A stretch of 63,973 nt of DNA, counting the filler, from Klebsormidium nitens (taxonomy: Eukaryota; Plantae; Klebsormidiophyceae), in the NCBI GenBank assembly GCA_000708835.1. It is 7 parts of 7 records of this genome, joined end to end, with 100 filler letters (N's around TTAATTAATTAA, not from the genome) between each part and the next. Parts side by side here need not be neighbours in the genome. Positions count along the whole stretch, not along the records: positions 1 to 29,944 come from DF237535.1; 6 more parts are not named here. The stretch is one strand, 5' to 3'. Under the pieces are notes generated by a model that was given only the letters and a program-made list of their open reading frames with translations, was not told where the DNA came from and ran no database searches. The position numbers and the translations under genes are program-made. Of this stretch, positions 7,260-29,944 are shown piece by piece. How positions within the stretch are numbered: position 1 is the first letter of the stretch; each line of letters begins with the position of its first letter.

Positions 7260-9000
7260 AACCTATCCTTTGTGCAAATGTGCTTTTCTCCTGCTGTCTT
7301 CAGAGATCACTGAGCGAAGTCTGTTTAAAAGGGATGTGCACTTGCGGCTACTTTAAGGCTACCTTACTTTTAGGAGAAAAGGCTCTGACGAGTCCCCATT
7401 GGCTGAATCGCGCACTTAAAAGCGCGACGCCAACCTTGGTGCCCACATCCACGGATGCCTTTAGAATCTGTCAATCTCCTGCGTACTTTTTTCCAATATT
7501 TTTCGTCCGCTGATTTGCGGAAGCGGACGAAAATGGCTCCACTCGGCTTCCGCAATGGAGTCGCAACGCCCGTCGGACGTACGATCGGAATTGCCGTCGG
7601 GGCTGCGTACGCCACACCGAGACGCTCTCGTTCTGCGATTCTTTGCTTGGAGCTTCTCAAATTACAATGGTCTCCATTCTCAGCTTTAAATGGTCTCAAT
7701 GGGGGACCGCTTGCCGTAGGACTAAAAAGCTCGACAGCCCTCTTGAGGTGCCGCCCATTTTGGACAAAAATCCAATTTTAGACTGCTTGCGTGAAAAACT
7801 TTTGAAGCCGCACGCTGAGATACTCATAAGCAGGTGCTCCGAGATCTTCCGTGTGCCCTTCACTAGTTGCTGGCTGTGATCGAAGAGCTCCTCGCAAAGA
7901 CTGAGAGTCAGAGCACCGTCTCTCAGACCTTCTGGTCGTTTTCGGAGCCTGAGCCATCCATCTGGGCGGCATGACGTGTGGCTGACGTTCATCCAGGCGG
8001 GCCACGCGCGTCGAGGCTTAGTAGCCTCCTTGCAATCCAACCAGTGTGTCACGTCGCGCTTCTTTTGAAGCTTGGGGTCAGGCATGTGTTTGGCATTTAT
8101 TTGTTCCTTTGAATGTAAGCAATGGCAGCTTACAGTCAATGACGGTCCAACCGCATGCCCTGACCTCCAGGCGTTTCTGCAAGAGCGCAAAGCGTGCAAG
8201 ATGTGGTGCCGGACTAGCGAAGCCAATTAATTAACGTCTGCTCCGATACGTAGATCCTTCATTCCCGGTTTTGCATGGGCTGTGAGGAGTCGCACCCGTG
8301 ATGTGATGGGCTGCCCTAGAAATTAACGGGCGTAGCCCACTTCTCGTGGAACGAGTCCATGATCCGGAAGCCCTCACACCTGTTCGTGTGAGGCAGCGGC
8401 AGTATAAAGTTGCATATGATGTAGCAAGGTGGATCCATTCAAGCGCCGGACGCTAGGACTTTCACCTCCATGATGATCAAAACTGTCTAGTTGCTCACTC
8501 AAACGCGCAGGAGAAACGCGGCAAATTAGGTACAGTCAATCACCTGAATGAAAAGCGCGTCGCTCTCGAAACGATACGGGGCCTAATATAGCCACTCTTT
8601 CTTGGAACCAAGTGATCATGATATGACGGTCGGCTCTCAGGCTCTGGTTCGGCCCCGGTTCGGGTACGTTGGAGTCGCGCCCTCACTGGCAGCTAGCACT
8701 GTTTATGCCCCAAGCTGTTGGTCTCCCTTTTCTGTCCGTCTGGAGCCCCGGCGTTCTGTGCAATTCTACTGCGGGCCTGGTCAAGAAGGAGTTCTCCTTC
8801 CTCTTAAACTTGATAATAGTTCAGACCCTAGCAGCCAAGTCCGATATATCGTACTATCTTCTGATTACATGGACGTACGCACTCTGGTTTTGACCGCAAA
8901 AAGACTTTCATGGTACCGAGGTACTCGGCTGTGATCAGATCACCTTGAGCAGTCTCATTTAGGCTTCGAGCGCTACTTCCGACCTGATGCCACCATGACT
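7260..9000. repeat. Copy II of the decayed repeat family
   Basis: Colinear with 13820-15480: CTGCTGTCTTCAGA start (GTGCTGTCTTCAGA in copy IV), GGGGGACCGCTTGCCGTAG (~7702), CCTGAGCCATCCATCTG (7948; also 13024, 14523), GCAGCCAAG...TGGACGTA (~8831 vs ~15421). Stops and frameshifts in all frames. Confidence 0.75.
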
Positions 9001-12639: not shown

Positions 12640-13620
12640 TGCAGGTTATGAGTAATATGCAGGATAGATTTGCCGTCGGGATTGCGCACGCCACACGGTG
12701 ACAGTCTTGTTCTGAAAGATCTCTGCGTAGTTCTAAGTTCTCAATCTTGCGAGGTACTTCAACGGGGGGCCGCTTGCCGTAGGATTCGAAGCTCGACAGC
12801 CGTTTCGAGGTGCCACCCACTGTTGAACAGATGTTCCCCAGCTTTGGACGGCTTGTTATAAAGGAACGAAATACAAGATTTTTAGGCTGCACGCTGAGAA
12901 CCTTAGAAGCATGTGTCTTCACATCGTACTTGTGCTCTTTATTCCTTGTCGGCTTTGATCGAGGAGCTCCTTGCAAAGGCTGAGAGTTAAAGCACCGTCG
13001 CTCAGTCCTTGTCACGCTCGGTGCCTGAGCCATCCATCTGGGCGACATGACGAGTGGTCGACGTCCATTGCAGCGGGCCATGCACACGCGTCGGCGCTTA
13101 CCAGCTTCCTTGAAACTTGAATGTGTAACGCCGCGCTTCTGAAGCGCTCAGGAACGGCCTTGATATATCGTGCTTGTTGTTTTACCTTGAAAGCTCGTCG
13201 CTTGATTTCATGTAAGAACTAACAGCACGGCTTTACCCCGAGCTCGAGGGTTCATTTATGTCGAAGCGCAAGATGTAGGGCCTGCTACGTGCGAGGCTGA
13301 CTCTGTCCGTGTCCCACCTCTTCATCCCCTTTATGCATGGGTTGTGAGGATCGAGAGCCCGTATGGGCTGCTCCGAAAAGTGCGTAGCTCACAGCGGCTG
13401 TTAAATCTGAAGCCTTTACGTTTGTGGGCGCGAGTAGCGGCGGCAGCAAGTAGCAAATTGGGTGTGAGCGCTTTCGGTGTCGAGCTACCCGGATCCATGA
13501 TCAAAGCTTTTGCTCGCTTCGTGGTGGGCATTGGCGGCGGTCCCGCAACCTGCTGCAGACGCGAATATTGCTCTTTGAAGGCAATAACATTGTTCCCCCT
13601 AGCTTCACATAGCTTGCAGG
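12640..13620. repeat. Copy III (partial) of the decayed repeat family
   Basis: GGGGGCCGCTTGCCGTAG (~12765), CCTGAGCCATCCATCTG (13024), GGCATTGGCGGCGGTCCCGCAA (13527, identical at 15027). Confidence 0.8.
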
Positions 13621-13819: not shown

Positions 13820-15480
13820 GAACCTTTTCTTTGTGCCGCTGTCTTTCTTCTCGTGCTGTCTTCAGAAAACAAAAGCAAATTCTGATCAGGTGAGATGTGC
13901 AATTGCGGCTACCTTGAGGCTGCCTAAGTTTCAGGAGAGAAGGCCCAGACGGTTCCCCGTTGGGCTAAACCGCTCATTCATGAAGGGGGACGCAAATTAA
14001 TCAGAGTGAAAATATGCCGGATGCCTTTAGACTCTGAAAGTCCTGCGTTTGTATTCCAACTATTATTTTTCCACTGAGTTTCGGAAGCGGACTAGAATGG
14101 GTCCCCTCGACTCCGCTGCGGCTTCCATTGGAGCCGCAAAGCCTTTCGTACGCACGAGCAGACTCGCCGTCGGGACTGCGCACACCTGCACACGGTGACG
14201 GTCTCGTTCGGAGGATCATTTGCTTGAAGCTTCTCAAATTGAAAAGGTACTACAACGGGGGGCCGCTTGCCGTAGAGATTTGCACGCTCAACAGCAGTAT
14301 CAAAGTGCCACTCATTTTGGAACAGACGTTCCCCAGCTTTGGACGGCTTGTGTGAAGGAACTTGGAACAAATATCAAGCTGCACGCTGAGATGCTCAGAA
14401 GCATGTGCCTTCAAATCGTAATTTAGCCCTTCATAAGTTGTCGGCTGTGCTTAAATAGCTCCTTGCAAAGACTGAGAGTCAAAGCACCGTCTCTCAGTTC
14501 TTGTCAAGTTTTTTGCTCGGAGCCTGAGCCATCCATCTGCGCGACATGACGTGTGACTTGACGTGCATTGCAGCGGGCCACACGCGTCGACGCTTAGCAG
14601 CTTTTCTGAGATTCACATGTGTAACGTCGCGCTTCTGATCACAGCTCGGGAACGGCCTTGGAAGATTCTGTGCTTGTTGTTCCGGCCTTGAAGGTTCGTT
14701 GCTTACGTTCAAAAGGATCTAACTGCACGTCCTGAGCTCGAAGGTTCAATTGTGTCGATGCGCAAGATCCAGAGCCTGCCTCGTGCGAGCTGACTCTGTC
14801 CGCGTCTTCCAATTGGTCCTCATTATGCACGGGTTCTGAAGATCTGGACCCGTGGCCTGCTCCAGAAGGGCGTAGCTCAGTCCGAAGCGGCTATTCGATC
14901 TGAAGCCCCTCACGTGCTTACGTTTGTAGGCGCGAATAGTGGTGGCACCAAGTAGCAAACTGGGTTTGAGCGCTTGTGATGTCGAGCTATCGAGATCCAT
15001 GCTCAAAGCAATACTTTTTCAAGGCGGGCATTGGCGGCGGTCCCGCAATCTGCAGAACGCAAAGGTTGCTCTTTGAGCGCCGTGATGTGCTCGCTTTGGT
15101 TTCAAGTAGCCAGGTCTCTTTAATCCAAAGCGCCCCGGTGAAAGGACGGTCTGCTCTGCTGAAGGCTTGTGATTCCGGTTGGCTCCTGATTACACTGTGC
15201 TTGCACTGGTTTCATCTGACTGATGGACCTCTTCAAGCGTTGTCTAGTACCGTTTTGTGCGAAATTTTCTGCCCCAAAAGTGAGTCCTACCGTGGATCGC
15301 CCTCAGTCTGTATCCGAGACGTCCTCTGCAATTCGTTACTGGGCGGCCTCGTCACGAAACAGCCCAATCGCGTTTCAGGCCCTTCTGCAATCAAAGACGT
15401 ACTGAGATTGCCCTTTTCGAGCAGCCAAGCCTTGCAAAGTACAATTTCTGCCAATTTGGCCTTGGACGTAGTATGGTCTT
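13820..15480. repeat. Copy IV of the decayed repeat family
   Basis: Same ordered anchors as copies II and III. Directly in tandem with copy III. Confidence 0.8.
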
Positions 15481-18363: not shown

Positions 18364-20883
18364 TCAATTAATTACGAGAGTGGGCTCATCTTTGAACTTG
18401 CTCTCGACCACCGCCATCTCCGCAACCCGGTCGAAGGTCTTGATCAGGTAGCCCAGGCGCTTCGTCTGGTTGAGGATGCAGCTGAACACTCGGATCTGTA
18501 AAAAGGGGATCAGACCGCGTAAAAGTTCGAGAGTGCCTTCTTGTAAGGCGACTCTTTGTGTGTCTTTCGCTTGACCTGCCGTTTCGCTGGTTCCAGCTTG
18601 ATGGTCTTACGCGAGATAGTAGGCTTCGGTATATATGGCATGTAATGCTTCGCCCCTGGGTCGAAATATAGATGGAATGCGTTCACTCGGCCCCTTGTGT
18701 TCGCGGTGTCGAACTCGCTCTCGCCCCCCGACTTTATGTGCACCACGATCTTAGCTTTGAGGAGCGCACTCAGAGCTATTAGTTCCGTGTTGCCTGCATA
18801 TGTGGTGGTCCTACTCATGACTCGCTTATAAGAGGGCCCGTCCTTGATGTTCGCCTCTCCGTCTACGTTGTTGCTCGCGTATTCGTTGAGAATGAGCTCG
18901 CCGCCGGTCAGGTTGCCTCTTATCCCCCCTAGAGGAGTTCTCATATGTCCGATGACGTAATCTACGGCAGCCTGTCTGAGCTTCTTGGAATTCCGGATGA
19001 TATACGTTCTGCTGAGCGTCGTCACGTCTACGCCCTTTGCCGCTAGAGATGCCAGGAGTATGCTGTGAAAGAGACAACTGCCGTCCCCAGGCACGTGCAT
19101 CAGTTTGAAAGTGGGTGGAACTTTGGAGCTGGACTTCCGCACGGGACCCCCTCTCTGATGCGACGCGCACCTATCTGAAGATGGAATCTTTACGCAGGCT
19201 GCACGCCTCTTGCAGTGTGCATCTTTGCGAGTCTTGCCCGTGCAACGTTCGCACGCCATGCTTCCTGTATTAAGCTCATGGAAATTTTCGGGCACTCGCC
19301 TGTTGGCCTCTGTGAAGCAGATAGTCGATGGGTACGAAGGTGGCCTTGGACATCTCGATCTGGTCGAAAAGGAGGTTGAGCTTGTCCGACAGGCGGAGCG
19401 GCAGCGCCGTGTCCTGGACGCAGTACCTCGCGATCTCTGCGATTCCTTCCGGCGTCCCCTGCTCGAACAGTTCGAAGAGCCGGCGGATGGGCATGTCGTT
19501 CTTGTGCTCGTTCAGGGTGACGGAGGCCACGTTTTCCAGGCTGTAACTGTCTAGCTTGTGCGACCGCTTCACGGCCTGCATGAGATCCAGGTCCAGGATC
19601 CCCTGCATGCTGACGAGGAGGAACTTGTTGAAGCCGAACGCTGCGGACTCCAGCTGTTTCTCGCTCAGCGTGCTGGGGACTCCTTTCAACCTGCCGACGT
19701 TAACAGGGACGCCGGCCCGCCGCGCAGACTTGTACAGAAAGTTCCAATCAAAGCCGTAGCCGTTCCAAGAGTAGATGACGTCCGGAGACTCATTCATCAG
19801 GAGGCGCTGCCAGGCCATGATGACCTCTCCTTCGGAGTCGTAATTCTCCACCACGACCCCTTCGATCGGAGCGCAGTCTTTGAGCGTGATCACGTGCCTC
19901 AGGTAGGGTTCTTTCTGGCCGTACACCTTGAAGGTGCTGCCGATGGTGATGGTCCGAGCTCCTTCGAAGGAACCCTCCGGAAATGAGCCGTCTGTGGTGT
20001 AGGCCTCTATGTCGAAGCTGCACTCCACCAGAGGCGGGATCTCAGCCCCTTGTCCTGCCTCCGTACGCTTGGCTCGGATGGCCGTCTGAGGGATGAGGAA
20101 CTCCAGGTCGCACGTGGACACCTGTCGAGCCTTGTCGACAGGTTTGCGTCCTCCGAGGTCGATGGTGTGCCAGCCGCATGGCAACGAGCCCGTCTCGTGA
20201 AAGAATTGGATGACTGGGGGCACGTTCGCTTCGTAGAGCGCGAATCGATGGGGGTCTCTCTTCAGCACCCACACGTTCAGTGGCTTCTTCTGTAGAGCGT
20301 ACTGGCACTGCTTCAGCGCCTTGTCCGAGGTGACTTGGAGCTTGTAGAAGAGGAAATCCTTGTCTCCATGGTAGCCTGCACGAAAAACGCACTCCTTTCA
20401 GTAATGCAAAGAGCAGGAGGGTATCTTTGATGACAACCAGGTATCGGCACCAGCACGCTAGCTTTGCCACTTTGCTCATGCGACTTCAGGCCTAGCATAG
20501 AACTTCTTGCTTCGCAGAGAGGTGACTCTTGCGATTCCTCCGTACGCCCGCCCGTTGATCGACAGGTAGATTCTTTCTGCAGTGGCGGTGGACTCCGCAT
20601 GGCCCCATCCTTCGGGAGCCTCCAGGTACAGTGCAGGGGCGAACGGTATGCGCAGGCACACGCTCTTGCCCTCCGCCGTCCGCCCGTACATGTAGATGAA
20701 GCACTGCTTAGCCGTGTCCTCCGCGTATGCAGCCCCGCCGTAATCATCAGGATGTTCGTCGTCTCGTTTCTTGTAAGATTGGATGAGGTCTATACAAGCT
20801 TTGAAGCGCTCGTGGTTGGCTGCTGCTTTGGTAGGGTCCATGTCTTCGTCTCGAGCATCGGTGGTGAGCATGAAAACCTCCAT
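18364..20883 (-). CDS. polB: Family-B DNA polymerase, viral type, spliced and 3'-truncated (N-terminal plus 3'-5' exonuclease region only; 531 aa if spliced)
   Basis: Exons 20883-20496, 20375-19300, 18495-18364. Motifs: YMYGRTAEGKSVC; KKFY-G|G-YHG across intron 1; ExoI SFDIEAY; ExoII WNGYGFDWNFL; YSLENVA; ExoIII YCVQDTALP; LHRGQQ|IRVFSCIL across intron 2. Homology ends at KFK (~18391), before the polymerase motifs. The intron 1 donor reads CT (G|CTAGGC); the intron 2 donor is GC (CAG|GCGAGT). Confidence 0.9.
18510..19259 (-). CDS. OTU-family cysteine protease/deubiquitinase with N-terminal C-x-C-x-C-x-H finger (249 aa), nested in polB intron 2
   Basis: ATG at 19259. VPGDGSCLFHSI carries the catalytic Asp/Cys, followed by YAGNTELIALS and C-terminal KHY (catalytic His). 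N-terminal CTGKTRKDAHCKRRAAC...CASHQ resembles fingers common in giant-virus proteins. The ORF lies wholly within 18496-19299. Confidence 0.9.
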   Translation of the reverse strand: MACERCTGKTRKDAHCKRRAACVKIPSSDRCASHQRGGPVRKSSSKVPPTFKLMHVPGDGSCLFHSILLASLAAKGVDVTTLSRTYIIRNSKKLRQAAVDYVIGHMRTPLGGIRGNLTGGELILNEYASNNVDGEANIKDGPSYKRVMSRTTTYAGNTELIALSALLKAKIVVHIKSGGESEFDTANTRGRVNAFHLYFDPGAKHYMPYIPKPTISRKTIKLEPAKRQVKRKTHKESPYKKALSNFYAV

Positions 20884-21145: not shown

Positions 21146-21943
21146 ATGGACCCCGACGCAGTAGCTTCTCTGCTAGACGTGCTGACTGCGCGCATCAGCG
21201 AACTCGAGGTTCAGACGAGGATTCTCTGCGAATTCCATACTCTCCAAGAGTGCCAGAAGCAGGGTTGCTTATTTCCTCAGCTCTTGGGGTCGAAAGCAAA
21301 GGCAGTCCGAAAGCACTATGCCGGGTCCACCAAGCAGCACGTCTTGGTGAGTTTCGATCATGGGGGCGTCGGGCTGGACCCCTGGGCGTTCGACCTCTAT
21401 GTCAGGTTCCTGAATGGCGAGTTTTTGGAAGTGACTACGATGGCGGTCAGGAATATGATATTGGCGTTGGAGGCCATGACTTCCGACGCTGGTGATAGGC
21501 CGCATTGGTACGATGTGCATAGCGGCGAGTTCAGCCCGCACACCTACGTGAGGAACGAGATAGTGTCCAGGATCGTGACGTTTCCGTTCCCTGAAGTGGT
21601 CGCTTTCGATGGTCTGCTGAGGAAATTCGTGCTCAGCTTCGATGAGGCGACTGACGTACGAGAGATTTGCTTCATGATTGAGCACATCCTGGAGTTTCTG
21701 GGCGAGCGCGTCGAAGAAGATGCTCTGGATATTTTCGAAATCGCTCCGGAGGTGGCGCGCGTGGCAAACATGCTTCTTGCGGGCGATTTCGTGAGAGGGG
21801 AGGAAGAGGACCAAATCTGGGACGAGGTGGCGTTCCAGATGCGGTTCAGAAGCTCCTCGAGCCGCCGTAGGCTGAGGGAAGAGATAGAGAGTGTGTTGAA
21901 AGCAGACTGCGGGGTAGCCTCGCATTCGGGCGGACCCGACTGA
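21146..21943 (+). CDS. Hypothetical acidic protein (265 aa) in the viral cluster
   Basis: Long intact intronless ORF with a TATA box and protein-like composition. No family recognised. Confidence 0.75.
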   Translation: MDPDAVASLLDVLTARISELEVQTRILCEFHTLQECQKQGCLFPQLLGSKAKAVRKHYAGSTKQHVLVSFDHGGVGLDPWAFDLYVRFLNGEFLEVTTMAVRNMILALEAMTSDAGDRPHWYDVHSGEFSPHTYVRNEIVSRIVTFPFPEVVAFDGLLRKFVLSFDEATDVREICFMIEHILEFLGERVEEDALDIFEIAPEVARVANMLLAGDFVRGEEEDQIWDEVAFQMRFRSSSSRRRLREEIESVLKADCGVASHSGGPD

Positions 21944-21975: not shown

Positions 21976-22185
21976 TCATCGCAGAACTCTGTCCATAGCT
22001 GCTCTTAGGTCAGCCAACTCCAGCATATGAGCGTTCCCAGTACGTTGGATGGCCTGTTGCCTTGCACTTTGTATGACTTTAGTGAGATAACAAACGATGG
22101 AATCGTCCAGAGCCTTGTATTGAGCCTGGTTCAGCTTTTGACCGACCAATCCCTCCACCGCACGTTTCGAGATCTTTGCAGGCAT
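21976..22185 (-). CDS. Tail-less histone H4-like histone-fold protein (69 aa)
   Basis: Aligns by eye to the H4 core: ISKRAVEGLV ~ ITKPAIRRLA; YKALDDSIVCYLTKVIQSA ~ YEETRGVLKVFLENVIRDA; LADLRAAMDR ~ AMDVVYALKR. Confidence 0.75.
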   Translation of the reverse strand: MPAKISKRAVEGLVGQKLNQAQYKALDDSIVCYLTKVIQSARQQAIQRTGNAHMLELADLRAAMDRVLR

Positions 22186-22232
22186 CTATCGAGATATATA
22201 TGTTTCATAGAATATTTGTGTGCCTAGGGCGG
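22186..22232. promoter_or_regulatory. 47-bp bidirectional promoter between the H4-like and H3-like genes
   Basis: Divergent ATGs at 22185 (-) and 22233 (+). Contains a symmetric TATA-like run, GATATATATG (22193-22202). Confidence 0.55.
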
Positions 22233-23576
22233 ATGGCTCTGTCGCAAACTACTTTCAATAAGATCGTAAAGAGTTACGTCCCGCAGAATACGCACGTTGC
22301 GAATGGATTCTATCAGGTGCTCAGGAATCGCTTGGACGACCGCATATCGAGGACTTTGGAAGGAGCAAAGACCCTCGCTATCTATGCACATGAGGCAAAG
22401 AATGAGTCATTCACTCCTACCGACGCGTCTATGGTCGACTATCTGGCCGGAATCCAGACGCGCGAAGATCTACAACTGCGTCCCATGCACGATCCAGCCT
22501 ACAACAACTTCTTCGATCGCATTCGTCGTCGGCGAGCGAAAGCCGTTCCCAAACAGGTCCCAGCCGAGGATGCCGGGATGAAGCTCGTACCGGACGTCGA
22601 TTGGGGAGGTGGAGGTGGAGGTGGAGGTGGGGACTCCGACGGTTGGGGTGGGGGCGGTGACAATTACAATAATCACCACAATCCTGCAAAGACCGTGTCG
22701 AAAGGCGCCGGTCATGCAAAGAGCGGCTCGAGGCAGAGCACAAAGAGCGTGTCGAAAGGCGCCGGTCATGCAAAGAGCGCCTCGAGGGAGAGCACAAAGA
22801 GCGTGTCGAAAGGAGCCGGTCTTGCAAAGAGTGGATCGAGGCAGAGTGCAAAGAGCGTGTCGAAAGGCGCCAGTCATGCAAAGAGCGGCTCGAGGGAGAG
22901 CACAAAGAGCGCTTCAAAAGGAGCCGGTCTTTCAAAAGGCGCCAGTCATGCAAGGAGTGGCTCCAGAGATATCGCTACTAAACGCGCGGTCAAGAGCGTC
23001 GTCGAGATCCAGGAGCCTAGGACGCCGATCCAACGCGCACGCAAGACGGTCGTCGGCGCGATTGCGCCTGAGACTCCTCGACGCCAGACACCGGCCAGAA
23101 AGAGAACGCAGCCGGTGTGGGCCCGCGACTACGTCGATAATGGGACGATAGATCTTCGGAGGATCAAGCGGGATTTCGTGAGAGTCAGCGTACCGGAAAC
23201 TTACAACAACCTGTTCCACGCCGTCCGTATAGCTACCGGTGAACAGAAGACGGTCCAAAAACTTCGCGACCAGTGTGCGTTGCTGGCTAGCCGAGAGAAC
23301 ACATTCGAGCCCATATACTTGCAGCATATGTCAGAAGATGATCTGAAGGAACACGTCGCATCGCTGAAGAAGAGAGAGAAGGGTGGGGAGTTGGAGTTAC
23401 GGGTGTTGGCGTTCATCACTAAATTCACGTTGTTCGTCAAGGAGGGTCATGTGCTCAAAAAGTACATCCCGGAGATCTTCCCTGATATGGCCGGTCCCAG
23501 CCAGCAGAATTACCCTCAAGCGGTTCTGGAAGTCAAGAGATATTACGACGTGTTGCGACCAAAGACGAATGCTTGA
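22233..23576 (+). CDS. Histone H3-like fold - Gly linker - basic 18-aa repeats - inactive OTU-fold fusion protein (447 aa)
   Basis: H3 core similarity: TTFNKIVKSY ~ LPFQRLVREI; LEGAKTLAIYA ~ FEDTNLCAIHA; SFTPTDASMVDYLAG ~ TIMPKDIQLARRIRG. C-terminal ~130 aa follow the OTU pattern VPETYNNLFHAV...KLRDQC...GGELELRVLA...RYYDVL, with catalytic Cys replaced by Asn and His by Tyr. Confidence 0.8.
   Translation: MALSQTTFNKIVKSYVPQNTHVANGFYQVLRNRLDDRISRTLEGAKTLAIYAHEAKNESFTPTDASMVDYLAGIQTREDLQLRPMHDPAYNNFFDRIRRRRAKAVPKQVPAEDAGMKLVPDVDWGGGGGGGGGDSDGWGGGGDNYNNHHNPAKTVSKGAGHAKSGSRQSTKSVSKGAGHAKSASRESTKSVSKGAGLAKSGSRQSAKSVSKGASHAKSGSRESTKSASKGAGLSKGASHARSGSRDIATKRAVKSVVEIQEPRTPIQRARKTVVGAIAPETPRRQTPARKRTQPVWARDYVDNGTIDLRRIKRDFVRVSVPETYNNLFHAVRIATGEQKTVQKLRDQCALLASRENTFEPIYLQHMSEDDLKEHVASLKKREKGGELELRVLAFITKFTLFVKEGHVLKKYIPEIFPDMAGPSQQNYPQAVLEVKRYYDVLRPKTNA
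22689..22967 (+). repeat. 54-bp (18-aa) coding tandem repeat, 4 full plus 2 partial copies
   Basis: KTVSKGAGHAKSGSRQST / KSVSKGAGHAKSASREST / KSVSKGAGLAKSGSRQSA / KSVSKGASHAKSGSREST / KSASKGAGL / SKGASHARSGSR. Confidence 0.95.
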
Positions 23577-23787: not shown

Positions 23788-24954
23788 CTAAATCTCGAGA
23801 CGCTTGAGTCTCTTAAGCCTGCTCAGCTGCGAGGAAAGACATTCTTTCCACGAGCTGTCAACATCGTTGTCGACATTGTTCGACAGATCTAGGCGGGTGA
23901 GCCGAGTAAGCGTGCTGATTGCTGGGGCTAAAACTGTCATGCCTGTCTCTCCTATCTCATTCTCACTCAGGTTCAAATCAAAAAGCCTCGTAAGAGTGCT
24001 CAACGATGGTACGAGAGCTGTGATACCCGCGCTCCCGATCCCGTTGACTGCCAGGCCCAAACAAGTGAGCCCCTTCAACGTACCAAGTACCGGTCCTATG
24101 ATGGTCATGCCCGCCTCCAGTAGTTCGTTATCGTCTAGGTACAGAGTGGAGAGCCTGGTCAGTCTGGTCAAGGTTGGCACCAGAGCGGCTGCGCCCCTAA
24201 TACCAATCTTATTACCGGTTAAGTCAAGGTGTGTTAGCTTAGCTAGCATGTTGAATGAAGGGGCCAGAGCTACCATGCCTGTCCCGTGTATTCTATTGTA
24301 ACCCAGACACATAGTGGAGAGCCCGGTCATCCTGCTTAAGGCTGAGTGGAGAGCCGCTGCCCCAAAACTTCCGATTTTGTTGAACGACATGTCTAAAGTT
24401 TCGAGCCTCGTTAATCTCCTCATCTCCAGTGCAAGTGCGGCAGCTACCTCATAACCAATACCATTGCTGCCTAAGCCCAGCTCTCTAAGGTTCGTGAGTT
24501 TTCCCAGCTCTTGCGCCAGGGCCTTGGCGCTACTGTCACGGAGCGTGTTGCACCCCAATCGGAGACGATTGAGCCCCGTCAACTTCCCCAACTGCGGCCC
24601 TAGAGCGGCAGCGCCCGCACGTTCGATCTTGCCGTATGGAGAAACGACCCTTTCGATGGAGTGGAATGGAAGCTCCAAGGTTGTCAGACGAGTCATACTT
24701 CCCAACCCAGAGCTCAGGACTGCAACGCCCTCCTCGTCGACCCTCGCACCTCTCAGCCTCATAAAGGTGAGATCCTGGTAAGAGCATACGCATCTGAGGA
24801 GCTCATGCCCCAGATCTCCACCCACTGTCAGATCAAGCCTTTCCACGTATCCCTCTGCTCCAGATAGGTACTGGCGTAGAGCTCTTCCATCTACCTGCTG
24901 AAGCATGTTTGCAGACATTTTCGCGGCACTTATACCTGCACATTGCAATAACAT
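23788..24954 (-). CDS. Ribonuclease-inhibitor-like (28-residue) leucine-rich-repeat protein, intronless (388 aa)
   Basis: About ten repeats of LxxLxxLxLxxNxIGxxGxxAL, e.g. LTNLRELGLGSNGIGYEVAAAL and LTRLETLDMSFNKIGSFGAAAL. Confidence 0.92.
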   Translation of the reverse strand: MLLQCAGISAAKMSANMLQQVDGRALRQYLSGAEGYVERLDLTVGGDLGHELLRCVCSYQDLTFMRLRGARVDEEGVAVLSSGLGSMTRLTTLELPFHSIERVVSPYGKIERAGAAALGPQLGKLTGLNRLRLGCNTLRDSSAKALAQELGKLTNLRELGLGSNGIGYEVAAALALEMRRLTRLETLDMSFNKIGSFGAAALHSALSRMTGLSTMCLGYNRIHGTGMVALAPSFNMLAKLTHLDLTGNKIGIRGAAALVPTLTRLTRLSTLYLDDNELLEAGMTIIGPVLGTLKGLTCLGLAVNGIGSAGITALVPSLSTLTRLFDLNLSENEIGETGMTVLAPAISTLTRLTRLDLSNNVDNDVDSSWKECLSSQLSRLKRLKRLEI

Positions 24955-25422: not shown

Positions 25423-28400
25423 TTAGACTACATCCCCCCCGCAGCACCGGAAGCACCTTTTCCAGGAAGACCCAGACGTCCCGGAAGAGTTGTTGGCAGC
25501 GGGCTCCCCGTCATCCTTCTCTGGGCCAGGTTCGCCAGGGAACCCCCTCGGGGCAGCATGAACCGGCAATCGCTTTTCCACACACTTCTGGCAGATCCAC
25601 ACCGTGGCCGGGCTCCCCTGCACGGCGTTAGGCGCGGTAGGCGCGCTGCTTGCTGAGGGCCCGCTGTCGGGGACTGCGCACGCGTGCGCCTCGTACAGGG
25701 TGAGGAGTTTGGTCCAGCCCTTGTCTTTGTCGTTCTCCTGGAGGAACTGCAGCAGCTCAGCGGCCTCGAGGCCCTCCTTGCTGACGTGGTGCAGGTCGCG
25801 GGATGCGCCCTCAGCGGCCGTTGGGAGCGCAGTGTTGGGCTGAGGGGGCAACGGAGAGGAAGGCGGGTGAGTTCACAGTCGCCTGCTCAGAATCAATGGG
25901 AAACGAGACTTTGGGCGACAAGTCATGTCTTGGGTCGCCCTCGCCCATGTGAGCACCAAGGGTAGACGTCACTTTCGTCTGCAAGCAACACGTGAAGCTG
26001 GCGATTCCTAGCAGGATCCGAGCCAGCGAAGAGGAGCTGGACAGTCGTTTGAAGCGGTTCACGAGGAAGCGATGGGCATGAAATGCCATTAAGGTTCGCG
26101 TCTTGCCGAAGGATCCTGACGAGTCAACTGCAACAAACATTGCGTGAACTAAAGGCTGCATGCTTGACGTGGATCCCATGTTTCAAAAATCCACCCTGCA
26201 GATTCGGAAGGGATTTTCCAGCGGCGAAATATGTGCAAGGAGACAGCATCGTATGTACACTCCAAGATGCTTGGGGGAGGGCTCGGCTGCGGCCTGACCC
26301 CTAAGCCCTTCTTTCCTGCAGCAACGAGGCAGTTTCGAACTGCGTCACAGTCCGCATCCTCGCATCCAAAGAATCAATTCCAATACTCGGGGGTCCGGAG
26401 TCTGCGCACTTGAAAATCGAGACAAGACACCAAAGAAAGTGATCTGCAGGGCGCTCGAATACCATACCTGGCGAAATACGGGACGAAGCAGTACGTAAAA
26501 GTACGATAGATCGGGGTCCGATTTGAATTTAGGGTACCCAAAGGGTCACAGGACGCTAAGCTCGGTGGATCGTCAGAGATCTTGACAACGACGGAAGTGT
26601 ACATTATTAACGGGGAAAGAAGGGTTGCAGCGGACTGGTCACCTGCTGCAACGGGGCTTTCAAGGCCTCTATAGCCTTGACCAGGCCGTCGGCCACCTTG
26701 TCCAGTCCTGCCATGGGCGCGCACAGGCTGCCCAGCTTGCCCAGGAGCAGCAGCACGCCCAGGCCAGCTGCCAACCTCTCGGCCCACTTGGACATCTGGA
26801 TCTTGTACCCGCTTCCCTGCACGAGAGGCGCAGAGGCATGGTGAACGATTCTGGTACACGGAGACGGTTGTAATGAAGCAGAGCCGCATGTAAGAGATCG
26901 TTGTCAGGAGCGAAACGAAATCGTAGTTTCAAGCTGATGAAGAAAGCTAGATTGACAAAGCCGGGACCTCGTTGTACGAGTGCTTCACGGGCGCCCACGT
27001 CAAGGTTGAAAGCATCCGGCTGGGAAATGGAATTTGCAGTACGATCCAAATCCGTGTACTGTTGCGCGGCAATGGAGAAGCCGTGGGCGCCGGTCACCTG
27101 AAGGGCGAAGCATTCCTCGCAGCAGAGGTACAGCGTCGCATCATGGCGAAACAGCTTCTGGACGAAACCGTTGTACACAACGGAGAAGGCCAGGCGCGCC
27201 TGATCTTCTGCCGAGGAGGTGCCCTTCACGACCTTGACCGCGGCCTTCCCAACTTCTTCAGAGATATTCTCCATAATGGACCGTGCCGTGGCGCTGGTGT
27301 CGCCATGGCGTTGAATCACAAACACGCGGGGGGCTCTATTCCGTTCCACCTCGACAATAAGCCTCCCAAGGGCATGCTGCGCTTTTTCGATGAGCTCCGG
27401 AAAGACCTTCTGGGCCCTCTCGATCCGCTGCAGTCCCGCTTTCACCTCCAACTTGAAGATGGTATTCTTCAATTCACCAGAGGCCGATTTCAAATCAGCA
27501 ACCGCCGGGGCAATCTTCAAATAGGGGACGAATTCAAGGTTCACTCCTGGCGCTCCGCACGAGGCCTCCAGGTCGCCGGCTGAGAACCCCCCACTCATCA
27601 CCTGCTTGAGGACCTCGGGGGTCATGGGAAGGAAGTGGTTGGGGTAGTGGTTCGGGCAAGCAGCGGAATATTGCAGCCTCTGGTACCCGCGGAAGTCGAC
27701 CATGTGCGCGTTATAGACAGAGGTGATGACGGGAGACAGACGCTCCCACAGTAGTCTGTTCGTGTCGTCTCCTACCCCCGTGGGTGCGTTCGCCTTTGCG
27801 AGGATGTCAAAGTCGACCCCGCCGTCGCGGCGCGTCCGGGACTCCACCAGCAGTGACCCGCCATCCGACAATAGCATCAGCGCCCCCCGCCGCCACCGCT
27901 GCTGGTGAGGGTACGCGGTGCACACCCCGGACCGCACCAACACGGTCTCGAAGAAGCCCGCCGGCAGGCGACCCGTGCTCATGAGCCGCCACCCTCGGAA
28001 GACAGTGCCCCCTGACTCAGAACTCCAGGACTCAACATCCGGCGGCCGCCCCTCTGTCCACAGCCCTGGGAGGAAGTACTCTCCCTGGATCGAGTACGCC
28101 AGCTCGAAGTGCTCCAGGATCTGGAGCAGGCGCGGGACATCGATTTCCCGGTTCCTCTCGCGCAGCTTGGGCAGCTCGGGGATGAGCTCCTTGTGCAGGA
28201 GGCCACGCTTGGTGAGGTCCTTGACCTTCTCCATCAAATGCGGCTTCCAGAGCGTCTTGTCATCCAGCGTGTGGCTGAAGATGCTCCCAAGCACCAGAGC
28301 CAACCACGATGGCTGCAGGAAAACGACCTCCTTCAGTTCCCGGACCTCTGAGAACCACAACACGTAGCCCAACGCGCTCCAATAGCTCAGGGCCTCTTCG

Positions 28401-29944
28401 AACTCCGTGACGCTCTGAAAACCTAGCTCGGCGGCTTCGACCCGCTCCCAGACCCGATCCTTACGAGCCTCCAACAGTGCTCCTGACTCCAGCACCGGTT
28501 CTTGCCCCTCGCCCTTCACGCCCTTATTGGCCTTGCCATCCAAGGACCGCTGGAACTCTGCAATCTTCTCGAACAGGCCGACCCACGACCGCGGGAGCAC
28601 CCGCTCAAAACGGCTGCGGTTGCCCCTCACGAGCTTGACCAGCGCTTGTTGCAGGGCGGCAACGGCGTGATACTCGGTCGAGGAGACGCAAAAGTACTGG
28701 CTCAGCAGCTCCGGTGGCTGCTGCACATAGCCGAGGTCGTCATACTCCTCGCTCTCCACAACAAGGTCAGCGTCACGCTTCAGGGAGGTCAAGAGGGAAT
28801 CATGCAGCGCCGCCAGGGTCTGATCTGCTTCTCCCACAGCTTTGTCGCGCTTTGTCCCCACCAGGATGAACGTCGCTCCCGGCGCAACAGCTTGGATCGA
28901 GTCCAGCCGATCCTGCATAGGAGTATAAAGCTGAAAGTCTTGGAAAGAAATAGTTTCATTGCTCCTTGATTTATGTTTCCTTCTAAGCAACCTGCCACAT
29001 TCGGTCAGACAGAGAAGCCTAGGACTTTAGACTAGGATCTGCAATGTTGAGAAGCGGCCGTATCTAAGTTTTAGCCCTGTTCCCGCCCTGTCTAATCTGG
29101 CGCGCTGCTCGATAGCAGCTGTATATGACTCTGAGTTTCAAAAGTTTACGTGATGAATTAGGAGGCACCACAAAAAGGGCCCAAAAGACACAGGAAGGAC
29201 AATTATCCGAGTATCTTCAAGCTGATTCACATGATCGAATTGTAGCTCAACCTTGAAATTGCTTCTAGTCATGCGCAGGGGTCAACCTCACTGTAAAGGA
29301 GACCGTTCACCACCTTTAGAGCGAAGTTGCTTAGGAAAACAAGAGCTAGGTTCGAAGGACTCGTATTCTAGGACGGGCTGAGAGATGCGGAAAGGGACGT
29401 TGACATCACGAACGTATCAGACGCATGCACAGTGCGTCTGTTTTTTCGACTAGTCATGACTTCACCTTCAAAATGCCAACGTCAATTTCCGCACTAAGGT
29501 CCACCACCAGGATGTAGAGGCACTGGTCCACGGTGAAGAAGAGGCGCTGCATCATCCCGTACTGCTCCTGGCCAGCGCAGTCAAATACCCGGAAGGTCAG
29601 CGGGACATCGCCTCCGCCCACGTCCACTGGCCACTCCAGAAACCCAACGTCAATGCCGACGGTGGTTTCAGTGCTGCCTTCCGCCACACGTTCTCCGCTC
29701 CGCAGGGCCGCAAACAAGCTCGACTTGCCCACCCCGCCAGGTCCGATAAACATGAGCTTAGCAATGGCCCTCTTGCCAGATCCCTTTGCTAGTTGCCGCA
29801 AAAAACTGAGAACTTCGGCAGTCCCCTTTTCCACTATTTCTGATGGGGGGACCTCCAGTCGGTTGCCCATCAGTCCCAATGTTCGCAAAGCAGGAAATGA
29901 CACAAGCTCTCCAGGAACGTTCACAATCTCGTTGTAGTCCAGTT
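25423..29944 (-). CDS. Roco protein (LRR-ROC-COR, TORNADO1-like C-terminus), spliced, 5'-truncated by gap
   Basis: Exons >29944-29466, 28912-27098, 26816-26643, 25839-25423 with in-phase GT-AG junctions. Last LRR, then P-loop GPGGVGKSS, TVGID, FDCAGQ, LVGTKRD; COR region WSALGYVLWF...FLQPSWL; C-terminal GYKIQMSKWAERLA and WICQKC. An extra exon in 25840-26642 cannot be excluded. Confidence 0.88.

Follow-up and report, generated by a model that had tools for sequence, protein, structure and literature searches.

A stretch of 63,973 nucleotides (nt) of Klebsormidium nitens DNA (assembly GCA_000708835.1), called the window in the following and numbered as a whole, contains a gene at 22233..23576 on the plus strand, in the part taken from DF237535.1 (1 to 29,944). 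It encodes a protein of 447 amino acids (aa) made up of an N domain, a basic middle and a C domain. To judge from its predicted structure the C domain almost certainly adopts an OTU deubiquitinase fold, and it is very probably catalytically dead. The prediction also supports a disordered, strongly basic repeat region in the middle, while the N domain is modelled, with moderate confidence, as a probable histone fold. This architecture is new, is built from known folds and occurs in a rare family. We tentatively propose, at a little under an even chance, that the protein is a DNA- or chromatin-anchored, non-catalytic arm or scaffold of a viral ubiquitin system and not a nucleosomal histone.

The open reading frame (ORF) is intact, with an ATG at 22233 and a stop codon at 23574-23576 following the 447 codons. 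The start Met is common to the relatives P0002 and P0003 (P numbers denote proteins of the family, L numbers related loci). A longer version beginning with TTG at 22176 was considered and rejected: it overlaps the start of a divergent 69-aa ORF and its upstream DNA shows no coding conservation. The original prediction, made from the sequence alone, had named this ORF and listed a series of features in it; the ORF is real and each of the listed features is found there. That they exceed chance is indicated by conservation of the N and C domains in 16 protein clusters, with ratios of nonsynonymous to synonymous substitution rates (dN/dS) of 0.03-0.22. The full-length protein gives no Pfam match at E<=1, and no histone chain is among its matches to PDB sequences.

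An OTU fold that has lost its catalytic residues

The C domain (aa 305-447, 23145..23573, plus strand) was modelled with AlphaFold2 from a 17-sequence alignment. Structure prediction of this part, which had been suggested as a check along with the original description of an OTU-pattern domain lacking Cys and His, returns an OTU fold with a predicted local distance difference test score (pLDDT) >90 over aa 310-447. In a Foldseek search of the PDB the model has 56 matches at E<=1e-3, and the best 50 are all OTU deubiquitinases, including the Wolbachia OTU, OTUD1, OTUD3, OTUD5/DUBA, yeast Otu1 and Otu2, A20 and nairovirus OTUs. The best matches reach a probability of 1.00, E values down to 3.9e-6 and target-normalised template modelling (TM) scores of 0.5-0.74, the highest being that of OTUD3 (0.74). 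At the sequence level, OTU (PF02338) is the top Pfam match of the C domain taken alone (E 0.057, 14.4 bits, under the gathering cut-off of 23.3). The stretch that Pfam OTU matches best lies within the C domain in three relatives, P0006 (which reaches 42.3 bits), P0005 and P0009.

The window also encodes a stand-alone, live OTU at 18510..19295 on the minus strand, in which the Cys and His motifs are intact (Pfam OTU E 1.3e-8). BLASTP of the C domain against it gives E 5 only. Profile alignment of the C domain with live OTUs by hhalign finds the correct register with weak scores (P 0.027 and 0.013) and was used for the register of catalytic positions only. Asn326 stands opposite the nucleophile Cys and, at low stringency, Tyr437 stands opposite the catalytic His. 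The secondary structure of the model agrees with these positions, as the helix 326-335 begins with Asn326 and Tyr437 directly precedes the strand 438-443; the equivalences rest on the hhalign register together with secondary-structure position and not on a residue-level superposition.

The replacements are family-wide. The Cys column holds Asn in 11/11 family members and the His column Tyr or Phe in 10/11, the remaining member having Cys, while the residue at His+2 (Asp439 in the window protein) is Asp in 9/11, Asn in one and His in one. Compared with an active OTU the C domain thus lacks the nucleophile Cys and the catalytic His and keeps an acidic or amide residue at His+2. The absence of both catalytic residues from the OTU-pattern domain, as first described, is thereby borne out. 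With Asn for the nucleophile and Tyr for the general-base His, the domain should, on sequence and predicted fold, be unable to work as a cysteine protease.

The single Cys of the protein, C348 (window 23274-23276), lies away from the catalytic place. It sits within the predicted helix 341-353 and is kept in 11/12 family members that cover the column. An alternative active site built on this residue was considered and rejected, on the grounds that it would lie inside the helix with no conserved His nearby.

A dN/dS of about 0.1 was obtained for the C domain, whose synonymous sites approach saturation (between distant sequences dS has reached it). Because this value indicates purifying selection, we regard the domain as a conserved, selected pseudo-OTU. 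It shares with the OTU deubiquitinases of PF02338 the fold and the acidic residue at His+2, and its Gly-Glu-Leu-Glu-Leu helix segment can be aligned with the equivalent part of live viral OTUs. It differs from them in the Asn for Cys, the Tyr or Phe for His, the Pfam score below the cut-off and a conserved N-terminal extension of ~25 aa that precedes the core and comprises two predicted helices (296-314).

To define the family we ran an exhaustive HMMER search with a three-sequence profile against 1.84 billion representative proteins (E<=0.001), which yielded 16 proteins (clusters). Pattern scans of IMG/VR with C and N profiles found no relative. The two domains occur jointly and separately. 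The window protein, P0002, P0003 and P0004 share the order N domain, basic linker, C domain. In P0005 (L004 1146-2918) one canonical OTU with Cys and His motifs and a stretch of Ser/Pro/Lys/Arg repeats stand between N and C domains, and in P0006 (L005 6001-8340) two canonical OTUs do so. P0007, P0011 and P0013 combine an OTU with the C domain and P0012 the N domain with an OTU; P0014 and P0016 consist of the N domain only and P0008 of the C domain only. The tandem arrangement of dead and live OTUs in these relatives makes an origin by duplication and a joint function plausible, although the sequence signal is too weak for proof.

The fusion had been put forward as one not described before, and the literature on histone folds, OTU domains and giant viruses bears this out in that none was found there. 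A search for papers on OTU domains or deubiquitinases in Nucleocytoviricota found none, and two papers on giant-virus histones, checked for the same two terms, make no mention of them.

The N domain, its small neighbour and the basic middle

The N domain (aa 1-98, 22233..22526, plus strand) was modelled in two AlphaFold2 runs that gave the same helices (5-13, 21-54, 62-71, 77-81 and 88-96) with pLDDT 57-79. In the model the first three helices, of 9, 34 and 10 residues, are joined by two 7-residue loops and form the short-long-short pattern of a histone fold; the short helices predicted after helix 3 resemble those of the H2B/NF-YB class. The topology is thus histone-fold-like and unproven. 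Among the best 50 Foldseek matches in the PDB there are 33 histone-fold chains, 14 CnrX chains and 3 others. The histone-fold chains come from CENP-T, NF-YB/NF-YC, Plasmodium ORP1/2, H4, H2A/H2B, Dpb4-Dpb3 and TAFs, while CnrX, an unrelated all-helical protein, is the top match. Among viral proteins the closest match is a TAF12-superfamily protein of Tetraselmis virus 1 (E 0.49). The domain is conserved in P0002-6, P0009, P0012, P0014 and P0016 and has a dN/dS of 0.03-0.22.

Immediately upstream, on the opposite strand, lies a 69-aa ORF (21976..22185, minus strand) that is not annotated in K. nitens and whose product is likely to pair with the N domain. A homologous small ORF occupies the same divergent position in 8/8 related loci that cover this flank (window, L001/L002, L003, L004, L005, L007, L008, which is cut by the contig end, and L009), with 32-39% identity in the distant loci. 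A sequence search with the 69-aa ORF returns close relatives only. No other piece of the locus is under such strong constraint as this ORF (dN/dS 0.04 against L013 and 0.06-0.08 against L001 and L003), whose product is basic (pI 9.9). A small, divergently encoded and tightly constrained neighbour is the arrangement expected of an obligate two-chain fold, and we lean, somewhat beyond an even chance, towards a pairing of the N domain with the 69-aa protein.

The same two-chain plan, with one small partner, is found in NF-YB/NF-YC, CENP-T/CENP-W, Dpb4/Dpb3 and TAF pairs, and these families supply the closest of the N domain's weak structural matches. These non-nucleosomal histone-fold pairs differ from the present one in that the structural and sequence match of the N domain is not significant and the pairing is a candidate one. 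No member of the NF-Y, CENP-T, Dpb or TAF histone-fold families is known to carry an OTU domain.

The divergent starts are separated by an AT-rich spacer of 47 nt (22186..22232), which may possibly be a bidirectional promoter. It is partly conserved with L001 and L003, with conserved blocks in three loci (window 22186-22232; L001 2588-2632; L003 365-405); in distant relatives the corresponding spacer has 6-30 nt only.

The middle of the protein (aa 99-304, 22527..23144, plus strand) has pLDDT <50 (aa 110-303 in the AlphaFold2 model of the whole protein), a net charge of +25 and a pI of 11.1. It contains in succession the elements that had been read from the sequence at the outset. A Gly-rich stretch (aa 125-142, 22605..22658, plus strand) has 9 consecutive Gly at aa 125-133 and another 4 at aa 139-142 and corresponds at the DNA level to a GGAGGT x4.3 repeat at 22605-22630. 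It is followed by a tandem repeat with a 54-nt period (aa 152-235, 22687..22936, plus strand; 4.6 copies, 86% matches, Tandem Repeats Finder score 381), which is translated into 18-aa units of K/S/G/A/R, has a pI of 11.7 and includes the quoted letters SKGAGHAKSGSR. The basic linker with S/T-P sites then spans aa 237-304, with a net charge of +9 and [ST]P at aa 264, 281 and 286. The two strings quoted from the C-terminal part, VPETYNNLFHAV and RYYDVL, are found as well.

Among relatives the middle regions share no sequence and the repeats are not conserved; what is conserved is composition. With few exceptions these regions are basic, with a net charge of +13 to +27; they contain much S/T/G/P/A and few hydrophobic residues. 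In the middle of P0005, 87 aa of Ser/Pro/Lys/Arg repeat contain 14 [ST]P sites, 7 of them with a basic residue two places on. From composition, the Gly run, the 4.6 x 18-aa repeat and the T-P/Arg-rich stretch would most likely bind nucleic acid non-specifically, and they may bear nuclear-targeting signals. The likeness to the basic tails of linker histones and sperm histones is one of composition (K/R/S/T/G/A/P-rich, net positive, repeated) rather than sequence homology, and those tails are terminal while the stretch described here is internal.

A viral remnant in the algal genome

The genes to the left of the focus gene form a viral segment with it. A family B DNA polymerase (PolB) remnant at 19276..20883 (minus strand; DNA_pol_B_exo1 E 1.8e-39) comprises N-terminal and exonuclease parts only and has 82% nucleotide identity to L001/L002. 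The polymerase domain is not among the window ORFs, which makes one truncation. A split of ~200 nt between the N-terminal and exonuclease parts is common to the window, L001 and L002 and therefore looks like a shared intron and not like decay. The live OTU gene abuts this remnant; its product is 43-47% identical (E 2e-42 and 2e-38) to stand-alone OTUs in L005 and L004, which lie two genes downstream of the homologues of the focus gene. Between PolB and the 69-aa ORF lies a conserved 265-aa ORF of unknown function (21146..21943, plus strand), which is fused to the focus ORF in the NCBI model KFL_005860030.

The order PolB, 265-aa ORF, 69-aa ORF, focus gene is shared with L001/L002 (Logan) at 70-82% nucleotide identity and is also present in L003 and L013. 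L001 is part of a gene-dense 55.9-kb contig with VLTF3, an expansin and virus-type domains of unknown function; L005 belongs to a contig of 58.3 kb. Homology to L001 ends at 23564, at the end of the focus gene, and the place of the next viral gene of L001 is taken in the window by a leucine-rich repeat (LRR) gene. This gene (23788-24954, minus strand, LRR_6 E 2.8e-17) and a COR-A gene (26669-28990, minus strand, E 3.4e-10) look like host genes of the ROCO/LRR type. On the other side, the left 18.4 kb contains no ORF >=180 aa, and its eight longest ORFs have no Pfam match. A dispersed repeat of ~300 nt occurs there in three copies with 65-85% identity (7792-8007, 12738-13083 and 14231-14582) and is probably host repeat DNA. 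No tRNA genes were found.

The end of synteny and the host-type flanks place the focus gene at the right edge of a viral remnant of ~5 kb in host DNA. We are highly confident that the locus is a phycodnavirus-like giant-virus remnant integrated in K. nitens, a genome in which core genes of nucleocytoplasmic large DNA viruses of phycodnavirus type have already been reported (PMC5294986). A second copy of the focus gene, P0004, 37% identical, lies beside VLTF3 in K. nitens DF238410.1 (L006) at 247-1498 and is annotated with a splice. The genome therefore contains at least two inserts, derived from different viruses of this lineage.

The gene in the alga may be a dead relic, open by chance or youth and silenced, so that the function belongs to the free virus alone. 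We consider this close to an even matter, falling slightly on the side against. The element is short and rearranged, PolB has lost its polymerase domain, the gene order shared with L001 breaks off directly behind the focus gene, and the left flank abounds in repeats and lacks long ORFs; passages in two papers describe viral inserts in eukaryotes as often methylated and silent (PMC11244446, PMC12344493). Against this, the three adjacent ORFs of 265, 69 and 447 aa are all intact, and the folded parts show a dN/dS of 0.04-0.22 in comparison with the closest relative, L013 (86% nucleotide identity), a signal that may itself stem from the viral phase. This alternative concerns the state of the locus and is compatible with the role that we propose for the protein family.

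Alternative readings and a role for the protein

Several results weigh against the anchored, ubiquitin-related role proposed above. None of the Foldseek matches of the N domain is significant (best E 0.36, best histone-fold E 0.56, TM 0.3-0.45), and the confidence of its model is moderate (pLDDT about 64). The N domain has no histone match in Pfam or among PDB sequences at E<=10. A search with an 8-sequence N-domain profile recovers family members only, none with a Pfam domain. With a pI of 8.1 the domain is nearly neutral, unlike DNA-wrapping histones. The 69-aa ORF and its homologues match nothing in Pfam or among PDB sequences, histone families included. The full-length protein and the N-domain, C-domain and partner profiles, run against PDB sequences (phmmer, hmmsearch), reveal no histone-fold family, only Gly-linker and chance matches, and hhalign of the N domain against the 69-aa protein is weak (P=0.077). 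On the side of the C domain, the sequence ties to live OTUs are weak by hhalign and by Pfam score. Ubiquitin binding, pairing with a live OTU and DNA binding are all properties that we infer. Finally, the gene lies in a rearranged K. nitens remnant and may be unexpressed.

These data leave room for a reading in which the N domain and its 69-aa neighbour make up a helical dimer with no relation to histones, with an anchor other than chromatin, for example a component of the virion or virus factory, and a middle that is a spacer. We regard it as possible but rather unlikely. Consistent with it are the absence of any significant structural or sequence match to histone folds, the place of CnrX at the top of the Foldseek matches and in 14 of the best 50, and the near neutrality of the domain. 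However, 33/36 of the non-CnrX matches among these 50 are histone-fold chains, the lengths of helices and loops fit a histone fold, an obligate two-chain fold would be expected to have just such a small, divergent and strongly constrained partner, and the linker stays basic across relatives that do not share its sequence.

In the alga the true product could also be the spliced 685-aa protein of the NCBI model, in which the upstream 265-aa ORF is joined to residue 20 onward and the N domain as described here is absent. P0001 (KFL_005860030), the 100% identical protein that a protein search returned and that NCBI assigns to K. nitens, has exactly this structure, and the second K. nitens copy, P0004, was modelled with a splice too. 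Yet the supposed intron would hold the whole conserved 69-aa gene on the opposite strand, and the splice discards 19 conserved residues, helix 1 included. In the window and in L001 the upstream ORF ends with a stop codon of its own, and in L013 it is a separate, complete gene; P0002, P0003 and L013 keep the two ORFs separate, and the start Met is conserved. The two ORFs were searched separately. We consider the spliced product improbable. As relatives keep separate ORFs, KFL_005860030 probably fuses two viral genes into a chimera; the annotation misses the conserved 69-aa gene between them.

The original prediction had assigned the N domain to a viral nucleosome as a histone of H3 type and had seen in the repeats extra tails or decoys and in the dead OTU a built-in ubiquitin reader. 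The helix pattern and the mostly histone-fold Foldseek matches, the basic repeats, the OTU fold devoid of Cys and His and the conserved small candidate partner would suit this view. In Pfam and PDB sequence searches, however, the N domain shows no likeness to H3 or any core histone, and its best structural matches are of CENP-T, NF-Y, Dpb4 and H4 types, with H3 not singled out. Helix 1 begins at residue 5, so that the domain has neither an N-terminal tail nor an extra N-terminal helix of the H3 type; it is not basic, and the repeats lack conservation. There is one candidate histone-fold gene pair only, and among the called genes of the L001, L004, L005, L007 and L009 flanks, a check that covered 4-14 kb of each contig, there is no Pfam Histone match and no canonical histone gene with which to build a viral nucleosome. 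What survives is a resemblance to generic histone folds at best; the H3 assignment finds no support and the nucleosomal reading is very improbable.

The histones of Marseilleviridae (doublets), Medusavirus (core and linker) and metagenomic viruses (histone repeats) are recognisable core-histone homologues, some fused into multi-domain chains or multiplets, and they build nucleosome-like particles (PMC11222145, PMC9145170, PMC13681535). If the N domain is a histone fold, it shares with them the trait of a virus-encoded histone fold of Nucleocytoviricota; they can be recognised as H2A, H2B, H3 or H4, whereas the protein described here is unrecognisable as any core histone.

In the role that we favour, that of an anchored arm or scaffold without catalysis, the N domain of ~95 aa would pair in histone-fold fashion with the product of the 69-aa ORF, which starts on the opposite strand at a distance of 47 nt, and this pair, together with the basic middle, would hold the protein on DNA or chromatin. 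The dead OTU would then act non-catalytically: it would bind ubiquitin or a ubiquitin-like protein, or else serve the viral live OTU as partner or scaffold. That live OTU is located in the same chain in deeper relatives and is a separate gene in the window. For such a ubiquitin-related, non-catalytic role of the dead OTU we see a modest case. Pseudo-deubiquitinases are known as scaffolds or allosteric partners, and OTUB1 blocks ubiquitination at chromatin without catalysis (PMC10919355). In these proteins a protease fold acts as a scaffold or allosterically or blocks an E2, in some cases on chromatin (PMC10919355), and the C domain is like the pseudo-deubiquitinases in having a fold under selection without catalytic residues. 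They differ from the protein described here in that homology is limited to the OTU fold and that no fusion to a histone-fold-like domain and basic repeats has been described for them.

More speculatively, viruses of this lineage may carry a two-gene histone-fold module whose larger chain delivers ubiquitin-handling domains onto DNA or chromatin. It is equally conjectural that such a module would bring live OTU erasers in some viruses and, in the Klebsormidium-associated clade, a dead OTU reader or blocker alone. Such a module would be a virus-built, chromatin-tethered ubiquitin eraser/reader system without a described counterpart. If the N domain and the 69-aa protein do form a histone-fold pair, viral histone folds would extend beyond the packaging of DNA to the anchoring of ubiquitin-system modules. 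The family also offers a natural series for the transition from deubiquitinase to pseudoenzyme, with two live OTUs plus the dead one, one live plus the dead one, and the dead one alone. A histone-fold pair of this kind, if real, would also provide a handle on how algal giant viruses treat ubiquitin marks on host or viral chromatin.

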